A stretch of DNA of 64,000 bases, from contig CATNEN010000025.1 in assembly GCA_950097015.1 (NCBI GenBank), forward strand, positions 8,060,001 through 8,124,000. The letters run 5' to 3'. Below, piece after piece: positions 50,878 through 53,800 of the stretch. Each line of letters begins with the position of its first letter. Within the stretch, counting starts at the first letter, position 1. The notes beneath the pieces were generated by a model. The model did not search any database. It was not told the origin of the DNA and worked only from the letters and a program-made list of their open reading frames with translations. The position numbers and the translations under genes are program-made. Origin of the DNA: Macrostomum hystrix (Eukaryota; Animalia; Platyhelminthes).

Positions 50878-53800
50878 CTACGACTTAGCTATATTTAGTC
50901 GATTCACTTTGCTTAACATCAGGCTTTGTCGTGCTGAGTTCATTCCCGCCAACAGAACAGGATCATTACTGCAGTCAGCAGAGGCGTCAGTCGGACTAAA
51001 CGGTTTCACGTTTTTGTAAGTTATCCACTCTCGAGTAGGTGGTTCCTCGAAAAACTGAACATGCAGAAAATGATTGCCACTGGAAGCAATGCGAGAAAAA
51101 GCGTTACTTTTTTGCTCGCGGCAAACTAGTGCTGGCCACCAAGGAAAACTTTTTAGTTTTGCCAAGACGGACGTCACCCTCTGCAAACGTTCGCGGTTGT
51201 TCCTGCTCCTGCACTAGCGTTGACTGATCATTTGGATGAATTAGTGATGATACTATTCTTGAAATGGCTTGCGCCTTTGAACGTCTTCCATGATTAATAG
51301 TTTTGAAGGTCTTCGGATCCTGCGACTTGGCTCGATTCTTGCGGACTTTAGTACTGATCTGGCGGCTTAGGTGAACTCGCTTAGATGCACCTTTGCTAGC
51401 TGCAGTTTTTACTTTTCTTCATATCAGCATTCTGTGCCTCACTGACAAACTCAGGAGTCCTCACTTCGACTTCAGACTCTAGAGCCACCTGGCTCACTTC
51501 TTTGCATGGCTCTGAAAGAGCGATATCGAAAAGCTCTTTTGCAACTTTTTTCACCTTCTTTGGCTAGACTAGACGTAGTAGCCATGTAGCTTTGCACTGC
51601 TACTTGCTTTGTATGATTCATTCGCTTGTGCAGTACACTTTGCTTTTCTTCGTTTAGGTGCTCTCGACCTTTTGTGGTGAAAAAGTGTCGAAAAAATTTG
51701 ACGTCGAACTGCTTCAGATCGTTCAAGATCGGGTAAGTGCGGCGTAGACTACGCAGGAAAGTCGAAAAGGAGTGGCCCGCGACTTGACGACCGTAATCGA
51801 AGAAAAAATCTGAGAGAACAGCGCCACAATTCAGCCTGAACTCACCATAGGCCAGCAAGCTTTCCTTAACTTCAGAAACAGATACGAAAATAGCACCTTG
51901 TGTCGAGGTTTTATGGTCCACAACCTCAAACATGGCATCGGGATCGTTCTCCAAATCCCTCTTCCACTCGAAAAATTGCTCCATCTTTGCGTTCGACACA
52001 GCGTCCGCGCGATGAAAGTTTGCTTTGCCGAAAATGAAGTGAAGGCCAAGGAACAAAAGATGCTGTTGAGATCCAACAGACGTCGATTCGGCGGCTTTTC
52101 GAAAGAACTCAAGGACGTTTAAGCAAACATTTAGTTCGTTCACAGAAAGAAGGCTCTTGTCTAATTTGCGCCTGCGCTTTGCTTCGGCGATTTTTTTGTC
52201 GCGGACTCTGGACTTTCCGTAACTATGACATGTGCATAGAAATGATTCTAAGTCACTTGACAATCCGTTGCTGGAAACAAGCCTTGAGAATGAGCTCTTT
52301 AGATATTGGCCAAAGCGCTTTAATCCTTCAACGTAGGACTTCGTGCCGTCGGAGAATGAATTGGATTTGCCAGTTAGGAAGACGGTTATTTGAGAGCGAT
52401 GCTTCTCTCTAATAATCTCTAGTGGTCGAACAACTCCAAGAACCGACATAATTTTATCGAGAGACCTTCGTGACTGCTTAGCAGTTGACTCGGCAAATTT
52501 CCCACCACTAAACAACCTTAGATGATTGTAGAAACTTTCCGAAGTTGGCTCAGAACTCCATTCTTCTTCAGCTGCAGCAGATGAACTAGCGTGCGCAGAT
52601 TTCGCCATCCAGCTACTTGAAACATATGACGAGACGATTTTCTCCTTCACTCCAGCAATGCACTCTTTTGCTTCTTCGGAGCTCATTTTGTGCCAGTTTT
52701 TCAGGTGGCTTGAAATGTTAGTCACAGGGATTTCACAGCGTGGACAAACACCAACTGCATTTGAAGATGTGGCTATCAGATGTTCTTCTTTATCTTCATC
52801 TGTCGATTCAGTTGAGTTTTCGACATCAAGCGACTTCTGCAGTTCACAGTCCCTCGGCATCTGTGTAGTAGAACTCTGTGCATCTTCGGCAGCAAGAAAC
52901 TGGATAGTAAATCTCTTACTTTTTTCAATGAGACTCTTGCGGCCCTCAGATCTGAGCTCGTCGGCATGAAATAGCTTGTAGTGTTCTAGAAATCTGGATT
53001 TTTTTTATTAAATGACACTTGTCTAAGTGGCACCTGTAATCCTTGCCTTGTCGCTTTGTTGATTTGTCGGTATTCCTCTTAACTTTATGCAGCTTACCAA
53101 ATCGCTTTTCGTTGAATGAAATTAACTCCTCTCTAAGGTCATCAAAGGAAGCATATTCCAACATCTGAGCTTCATGCTTCCTAAAAAAATGTTGCCTAAT
53201 TCTTGATGCCTTAATAATGTGCGTTGGATCGACATGACATACATAGTCAACGCCTTGACGCGGCTTCAATATAGTCCTTTTGGAACTGGCAATGTTTCCG
53301 ATCGATCGAAGAGACTTGTCCATTTTCACACAGCGATTATCATCGATTGTGAAGCAGATAAGGTCACCTTTACCTTCCAACAAAGCAGGCTGCAGACGGA
53401 AAATACTCGATGATAGAGACTGTGATGCCTCATCAGCGTCGAGGTCACAGTCGGTTTCATTGTAGAGCCGGACTTTTGAATTACTATTTGCACCTACTTT
53501 CCTCTTACTGACTTGGCTTGTCACTTGTACCTGATCAGACGCGGCAGTAAGCGACGCCTTCAGGTCGATGACTTGGACTCCATCTTGCACCTGATCAGAC
53601 GCGGCAGTAAGCGACGCCTTCAGGTCGATGACTTGGACTCCATCTTGCACCTGATCAGACGCGACAGTAAGCGACGCCTTCGGGTTGATGACTTGGACTC
53701 CATCTTGCACCTGATCAGACGCGGCAATCAGTGGCGCCTTCGGGTCGATGACTTGGACTCCATCTTGCACCTGATCAGACGCGACAATCAGTGGCGCCTT

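Follow-up and report, generated by a model that had tools for sequence, protein, structure and literature searches.

How does an enzyme that integrates DNA come to prefer one kind of chromatin over another? One answer that involves a PWWP domain is LEDGF/p75, whose H3K36me-reading PWWP directs HIV-1 integration into transcribed gene bodies. In its main text, a large survey of how transposable elements have fused with chromatin domains lists Chromo and PHD as the common fusions and makes no mention of fusions with PWWP (bioRxiv 10.1101/2021.11.30.470311). In animal Cryptons, which are tyrosine recombinase (YR) elements, the YR is the sole recognisable domain (PMC3212892), and our literature search found no precedent that links Cryptons or YR transposons with PWWP. 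Here, we describe a gene that may join the two. It lies in a 64,000-nucleotide (nt) stretch of the genome of the flatworm Macrostomum hystrix (GenBank assembly GCA_950097015.1, contig CATNEN010000025.1, positions 8,060,001 to 8,124,000), which we call the window and number from its first letter; on its minus strand, a predicted YR gene is followed immediately by a PWWP domain like those of MSH6 and the NSD proteins.

The explanation that we favor, with confidence a little better than even, is that this is a rare flatworm-type YR-only gene, the ancestral product of which carried a C-terminal PWWP domain and would, if intact, have been guided by H3K36 methylation. The case as it stands is one broken copy, and its value is that of a lead.

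The PWWP domain and the predicted recombinase core

An initial annotation of the window had proposed, at 50878-51190, a PWWP domain of the MSH6/NSD type with an intact aromatic cage, and the domain, its type, and its three cage aromatics have all held up. It is encoded on the minus strand (51190-50878; open reading frame [ORF] 51186-50878), the plus-strand translation of the same positions being riddled with stops, and the ORF matches Pfam PF00855 with E=6.1e-14 and 52.7 bits (cut-off 25.6) over profile positions 4-68 of 93. In a search against all solved structures, the closest were those of the MSH6 PWWP (2gfu at E=2.6e-12, with 6oqm and 8ag6), followed by NSD3 (E of about 1e-8) and then NSD2 (about 1e-6 to 1e-7). 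The alignment to MSH6 spans residues 7-101, which is the whole PWWP with its C-terminal helices included, and holds about 33 identities in 95 aligned positions (about 35%, counted by eye from the alignment); in it, SFPWWP of the window domain pairs with GYPWWP and HVQFFEEPPTREW with HVQFFDDSPTRGW, and both proteins have the QFF strand.

Because this alignment places them at the methyl-lysine cage positions, we take the cage to consist of F14 (in SFPWWP, 51147-51145), W17 (51138-51136), and F45/F46 (in QFF, 51054-51049), all of them aromatic; three-aromatic cages in PWWP domains bind methyl-lysine, and our cage definition comes from the same source (PMC3119473). Judged by these alignments, the domain is a genuine PWWP of the MSH6/NSD type with three cage aromatics. 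Since the cage is occupied and the domain is so close to the PWWPs of MSH6 and the NSD proteins, we propose for it a preference for H3K36me2/3; such binding would follow from what other PWWP proteins do.

The domain in this copy does not begin cleanly. The peptide that had been quoted for it, FAEGDVVLAKLKSFPWWPALV, is not one translation: FAEGDV and VLAKLKSFPWWP lie in different frames, and the switch at 51170/51169 falls on the CC within GGTGACGTC-C-GTCTTGGCA (GDV|VLAK). Because the frame changes there, either the first strand of the PWWP is broken in the window copy or the assembly carries a one-base error. The rest of the domain, from VLAKLKSFPWWP through HVQFFEEPPTREW to the C-terminal helices, runs from 51168 to 50878, and the sequence alignments cover the barrel and those helices; profile position 4 is the first that the Pfam match covers, which fits first PWWP positions encoded in the other frame. 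(An AlphaFold2 [AF2] model of the domain, made from the single sequence, reached a predicted local distance difference test [pLDDT] of 42 and was not used.) A TAG at 50880-50878 directly follows the PWWP. No MutS domains, which we looked for as a test of MSH6 orthology, come after it, and on the minus strand from 50878 down to 44800, there is no ORF of 60 or more amino acids (aa). The PWWP segment has no start codon of its own.

Upstream of the PWWP on the same strand lie two long ORFs, 54286-52946 and 52860-51472. We read them as one gene, because the nearest relative in any collection that we searched is one uninterrupted ORF and is colinear with both. That relative (P0001) is a hypothetical protein of Macrostomum lignano, 1090 aa long and 55% identical. 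The first coding segment, 54217-52999, starts with an ATG at 54217 and is colinear with P0001 in tblastn (E=2e-29); the second, 52998-51546, contains ORF 52860-51472 up to a break described below, shares the 55% identity, and encodes a C2H2-like finger, a helical N-terminal domain, and what we predict to be a YR catalytic domain.

Two observations carry that prediction. The first is a series of residues, R284 (52011-52009), K317 (51912-51910), R391 (51690-51688), H416 (51615-51613), and Y425 (51588-51586), that is kept across the 11-sequence family alignment A1 as GNAxR-x-D, HKT, [YF]R, H, and QSY and that is spaced in the window protein by 33/74/25/9 residues. The corresponding spacing in XerD, 24/75/23/9, is close to this. 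The second is an AF2 model built on the family alignment (pLDDT 76.5), in which the two-domain fold of a core-binding and a catalytic domain is present and for which the best Foldseek matches are XerA (5hxy, E=6e-4, probability 1.0), an archaeal Xer (4a8e), XerD (1a0p), XerH, Cre, and other integrases, with global template modelling (TM) scores that are low (0.28/0.44). The second histidine of the usual set, that of HxxR, is not conserved: three residues ahead of Arg-II, the window protein has K, P0001 has R, and the other relatives have T. A Lys occupies the corresponding site in type IB topoisomerases, so catalysis is still conceivable. In sequence searches of Pfam, PHROG, and the PDB, family profile included, the recombinase has no meaningful match; the DUF3504 and integrase models of Pfam give none at E<=1 for the window protein, and DUF3504 gives none at E<=0.1 for the 10 relatives scanned. 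From the predicted Xer/Cre-like fold together with the R-K-R-H-Y series, then, the core is predicted to be a tyrosine recombinase.

Relatives and the case for one ancestral protein

Neither ORF has a significant Pfam match, and a word search with the recombinase ORF came back blank. For these reasons, an exhaustive search seemed justified, and we took in 1.84 billion representative proteins; the total yield was 11 relatives. The word search was blank for the PWWP as well and returned only P0001 itself when P0001 was the query. No relative turned up when viral, prokaryotic-genome, and metagenome contigs were scanned with the recombinase pair alignment, nor when metagenome contigs were scanned with the PWWP. 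The recombinase family is thus very poorly sampled, and it has no Pfam model. One of its members (L002, a Logan contig from SRR29257315) has its recombinase in at least three exons, 501-1274, 2392-2592, and 3201-3359; the introns, roughly 1.1 and 0.6 kb long, split it just before the lysine of HKT and before the H...Y region.

The N-terminal part is shared with P0001 in kind if not always in letter. Its acidic N-terminus aligns with that of P0001, and the motif LLQ.L.D.PI.M.EM is common to both. Within the ORF, at 54069-53524 on the minus strand, comes a 60-bp in-frame repeat, ASDQVQDGVQVIDPKAPLIA, in about nine copies, with a GC content at third codon positions (GC3) of 0.75 vs. 0.41-0.45 in the rest of the ORF. 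The same position holds an unrelated in-frame repeat in P0001 (VHVEGTEG) and yet another in P0002, and by these comparisons, the N-terminal repeat region is one that turns over quickly. A first CHHC-like zinc finger, CHVDPTHIIKASRIRQHFFRKH, lies at 53239-53174. A second such motif, at about 53030-52960, spans a run of eight A's and reads YRCHLDKCHLIKK | SRFLEHYKLFH, its second part being in another frame; the equivalent in P0001, YWCHLDPTHLIKQSRFADHFKHFH, is read straight through. A C2H2-like finger, CPRCEIPVTNISSHLKNWH, follows at 52746-52690 in the second segment. Fingers of the CHHC type ahead of the recombinase are a feature of the family: P0001, too, has two CHHC-like fingers (YVCHLD..H...SRI.QHF.R.H) and a C2H2-like one (CP.C......SHL..WH.MS.EEAKE), and another family member, P0007, matches the Pfam zf-U11-48K CHHC finger above threshold (E=8.6e-5). 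We also note that P0007 has a C2H2-like finger followed by H.MS.EEAKE and that P0010, a 171-aa protein from an ENA contig, consists of three tandem copies of this C2H2-like finger with H.MS.EEAKE and nothing else.

Were the recombinase and the PWWP once one protein? The suggestion that the recombinase carries its own PWWP stands as far as position goes, the PWWP being immediately 3' of the predicted YR gene, and fails as far as frame goes: in the assembled sequence, the two are not in one frame, and at least three breaks lie between the start of the recombinase and the PWWP (53006-52999, 51551-51546, and 51418-51399, or in place of the last a 43-nt intron). The first is the A8 homopolymer at 53006-52999, which cuts the second finger motif and through which P0001 reads. 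The second is an A6 homopolymer at 51551-51546, where the homologous reading moves to another frame: after it, VAKELFDIALS matches VARNLYDLAIS of the P0001 tail, and the shifted frame scores 65 against that tail by Smith-Waterman, a value reached by 0 of 2000 shuffles, vs. 15 for the unshifted frame (p=0.71). The resulting post-recombinase tail, homologous by Smith-Waterman to that of P0001, occupies 51545-51399 and ends in a TAG at 51398-51396. The third break is either a one-base indel within 51418-51399, where there are runs of four and five A's, or a 43-nt GTGAGG...CTGCAG intron at 51442-51400; the tail frame and the third open frame overlap by 20 nt. From there, a basic linker of 83 codons (51418-51170), with 23% K+R, no Met, no stop, and no Pfam or PDB match, runs into strand 1 of the PWWP as ...PRTFAEGDV and meets the fourth break, the one in that strand, at 51170-51169.

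Two other readings of this region were considered and rejected. An 89-nt GT..AG intron at 51487-51399 would join the recombinase frame to the linker, and it fails because the frame homologous to the P0001 tail is the one after the A6 run and not the unshifted one. A resemblance of the linker (RRSKAQAISRIVSSL) to the P0001 C-terminus (QRKSKTIAFSLLSEL) is not significant (no BLASTP alignment; p=0.55). Many GT..AG introns are formally possible when all are enumerated, so enumeration cannot decide the structure, and the 43-nt candidate is the only one that we note. As a side observation, the linker reads QSTL at 51228-51217 (...NDQSTLVQEQ...), about 16 residues ahead of the PWWP. Human MSH6 has at its N-terminus a PCNA-binding PIP box that starts with QSTLYSFF, of which the aromatic pair is absent here; this QSTL may have come down from an MSH6-like donor, or it may be chance.

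Breaks 1 and 2 fall at long A runs, as is typical of long-read assembly errors. In-frame nonsense substitutions are absent. With its three to four one-base frame breaks, the window copy has either decayed, as a young pseudogene, or been mis-assembled.

Looking past the breaks, three lines of evidence suggest a common origin in one reading frame. The first is frame continuity: the 414-nt bridge to the PWWP is crossed with 2 frame switches, and as few or fewer occur in 1.3% of shuffles and in 4.8% of real non-coding windows from the contig; the whole 3,337-nt path takes 4 switches vs. 22-62 in control windows. The second is composition. The linker has a GC content of 0.458 and a GC3 of 0.386, and linker plus PWWP have 0.44-0.46 and 0.39-0.40; GC3 is 0.45 in the recombinase ORF, 0.41 in the non-repeat part of ORF1, and 0.42 in the P0001 ORF. 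Host exons of the window have a GC3 of 0.54-0.76, and flanking non-coding DNA has a GC content of 0.30-0.34. That the linker and PWWP resemble the recombinase ORF in composition argues that they are neither a host exon nor a fragment recently taken from the host. The third is the basic tail: in relatives whose C-terminus is long, the recombinase is followed by a basic tail (K+R 0.15-0.20), and the linker, at 0.23, is in line with these. On these three grounds, we think that the recombinase and the PWWP were probably once a single protein; an ancestral fusion is the most likely anatomy, drawn as it is from a single copy.

Several points weigh against this reading. A Pfam scan of 10 relatives found the PWWP in none of them (0/10), it is likewise in none of the 6 related loci within the flanks that we fetched (which included 10 kb on each side in M. 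lignano), and neither the window nor any collection open to search yielded a second copy, which leaves a single sequence to carry the fusion. Statistically, the support from continuity is moderate (p about 0.01-0.05). The recombinase and the PWWP do not share a frame here, and a frame shift also falls within the PWWP; host exons of the window can be read for several kilobases without a visible break, so the breaks here may be real decay.

The alternative that makes most of these points is that the PWWP is a separate dead fragment 3' of the recombinase, perhaps captured or retro-copied from an MSH6-like or other PWWP gene. The recombinase would then end at the TAG at 51398-51396, which does close the homologous tail frame, and would have a short tail as several relatives do; the frame shift in the PWWP, its absence from every relative scanned, the moderate continuity, and the fact that its nearest solved relative is MSH6, a host repair protein, would all be as expected. 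A stray fragment does less well with what lies in front of the domain, where about 77 codons ahead of strand 1 are open in its frame, contain no Met, and overlap the end of the recombinase tail frame. Nor does it account for a GC content and GC3 that match the recombinase ORF rather than host exons or flanking non-coding DNA, for the lack of any other MSH6-like coding sequence nearby, or for an ORF that stops right after the PWWP. We regard a separate fragment as unlikely and still the strongest competitor to an ancestral fusion.

Mobile element or host gene, and the neighborhood

The gene lies between a Cys-loop receptor gene, with its stop codon at 57013-57011, and an epsin gene, with its ATG at 44791. 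From that stop codon to that ATG is 12.2 kb, and the three genes share the minus strand. The initial annotation had placed the insertion in the last exon of a gene, and we see no evidence of this: those two genes supply the nearest coding exons, and no coding exon is interrupted. (One insertion site carries no statistical weight in any event.) Between the flanking host exons, there is no reverse transcriptase or other enzyme ORF, and from 44.8 to 57.0 kb, there is no ORF of more than 100 aa beyond the gene's own and those derived from repeats. The layout is Crypton-like for just this reason, a YR with neither a reverse transcriptase nor another enzyme between the flanking exons. By its sequence, the gene belongs to none of the described Crypton groups (CryptonA/F/I/S, DUF3504-like).

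Is the family mobile, then, or has it settled down as a family of host genes? Several features speak for mobility: the catalytic residues are fully kept across the family, GC3 is unlike that of host genes, the gene neighborhood in the window differs from that in M. lignano, divergent lineages of the family coexist within one genome or sample, internal repeats turn over fast, and the ORF has tandem arrays beside it at each of the three long loci (3/3). Counting on the other side are the terminal inverted or direct repeats and target duplications that we sought around the element and did not find, only short weak pairs being present; the low copy number in M. lignano, 1-3 per lineage, which fits its ploidy; and the introns in L002.

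These same facts are the core of the next alternative, a domesticated host gene family encoding a recombinase-derived factor for chromatin or DNA processing, in which the PWWP localizes a host function in this lineage and the window copy is a pseudogene or mis-assembled. Crypton-derived host genes are well documented (PMC3212892), and a family with just 11 relatives among all of the proteins searched, copy numbers compatible with ploidy, introns inside one recombinase, and no terminal repeats found could be another. The described Crypton-derived genes, however, lost their catalytic residues (PMC3212892), and here these are kept, the tyrosine among them. A host gene would also sit poorly with a GC3 far from that of host exons, with neighborhoods that differ between the window and M. 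lignano, with divergent lineages side by side in one genome or sample, and with fast turnover of the N-terminal repeats alongside a frame-shifted window copy. We therefore hold domestication to be improbable, a shade more so than a stray PWWP fragment. That a chimeric assembly put the recombinase beside the PWWP is very improbable indeed: the region is very rich in tandem repeats and several breaks are at homopolymers, but the junction (51566-51170) is unique, has no repeat where the two meet, and is uniform in composition with both sides.

The arrays that flank the gene deserve a description of their own. Upstream, a 57-bp tandem array of about 16 copies at 97% identity (54358-55287) ends about 140 nt before the ATG and may belong to the element. 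Downstream, at 47718-50037, are arrays that may form its 3' part: a 66-bp unit x12 (49223-50037), an 83-bp unit x2 (48922-49113), and a 17/199-bp array (47718-48316). The nearest array that possibly belongs to the element begins about 1.6 kb below the stop codon of the Cys-loop receptor. In M. lignano, one locus (L001) has an array at 13350-14400, just after the ORF stop codon, and another (L003) has a unit of about 445 bp repeated upstream (8787-11180) and overlapping the N-terminal coding sequence. Such highly regular arrays, directly beside the recombinase ORF in all three long loci, could serve the family as sites of recombination or regulation.

As for the rest of the window, the host exons, all on the minus strand and with a GC3 of about 0.54-0.76, lie at 5505-6983, 18121-18882, 26226-28208, 43602-44791, 57011-57451, and 58042-58800. 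In a compact layout, they encode an ANF-receptor (mGluR-like), a WD-like protein resembling dynein intermediate chain (no Pfam match), a SAMD1-WH with a double PHD, the epsin ENTH with a following exon, and two exons of the Cys-loop receptor, the one nearest to our gene being the receptor's last exon. Long tandem arrays are unusually dense (59690-62991, 2700-4100, 4900-5500, 8115-9020, 15100-17300, and 58798-59287); among them are a 31-bp unit whose array exceeds 3 kb and is strongly skewed in both GC and AT, 490 bp of (GTA)n beside the receptor exon, and several units of 12-39 bp, and they yield long spurious ORFs on both strands. At 11485-13073 on the plus strand, opposite to the neighboring host genes, are GC-rich ORFs (57% GC; 306 and 188 aa) that are hydrophobic, rich in Ala, Leu, and Gly, and membrane-protein-like, with no Pfam match. 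An Rfam scan of the window found nothing.

The proposed protein and its place among known systems

What would the intact protein have looked like, and what might it have done? We picture an ancestral protein of about 1,110 aa that opened with an acidic N-terminus, in which an in-frame repeat varied, continued with two CHHC-like fingers, one C2H2-like finger, and a YR of two domains, and closed with a basic tail followed by an MSH6-type PWWP that was probably gained in the lineage of the window alone. If such a protein were made, the zinc fingers and recombinase would bind DNA and exchange strands, the PWWP and basic tail would hold the enzyme on H3K36me2/3 nucleosomes and linker DNA, and its action would thereby be biased toward transcribed gene bodies and their 3' ends. 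The targeting of integration is suggested here by analogy with chromodomain-bearing elements and with LEDGF and HIV.

A bolder claim can be framed from this, namely that YR-only mobile elements of a flatworm lineage fused to themselves an MSH6-type, H3K36me-reading PWWP and that, with a recombinase fused to such a reader, active copies would integrate preferentially in transcribed gene bodies or 3' ends. We hold this to be a long shot, argued by analogy. If it were true, a DNA transposon recombinase would for the first time have a reader of an active-chromatin mark built into it, as a cis-encoded counterpart of LEDGF-guided HIV integration. A PWWP-YR fusion would aim the enzyme at H3K36-methylated, transcribed DNA, the opposite of what heterochromatin-favoring chromodomains do; designers of chromatin-directed recombinases would have a compact natural example to follow, and a very poorly sampled recombinase family would be documented.

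How does the gene compare, finally, with what has been described? With Cryptons (Kojima and Jurka 2011, PMC3212892), it shares a eukaryotic YR gene with no reverse transcriptase nearby and a low copy number; some Crypton groups also carry extra DNA-binding domains (GCR1_C), and one relative of the window gene has introns. It departs from them in having no DUF3504 or integrase match, in not conserving the His of HxxR (K, R, or T instead), in a zinc-finger N-terminus that is not described for Cryptons, and in that no 4-6-bp terminal direct repeats were identified. With the PWWP of MSH6 and PWWP1 of NSD2 and NSD3, the window PWWP has in common GxPWWP, the QFF strand, and the three cage aromatics; unlike them, it is C-terminal and followed by a stop, with neither MutS nor SET, and it has a frame shift in strand 1 and a codon composition like that of the recombinase. 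Like the integrases of chromoviruses, the proposed protein would place a Royal-family reader at the C-terminus of an integrating enzyme, with tethering to a histone mark as the proposed function; unlike chromodomain and PHD elements, it would use a PWWP, for which the expected mark is H3K36me, in place of a PHD or of a chromodomain (H3K9me), and a YR in place of a DDE integrase or transposase. In the case of LEDGF and HIV-1, the PWWP resides on a host cofactor that the integrase binds, whereas here it would be fused to the recombinase in cis.

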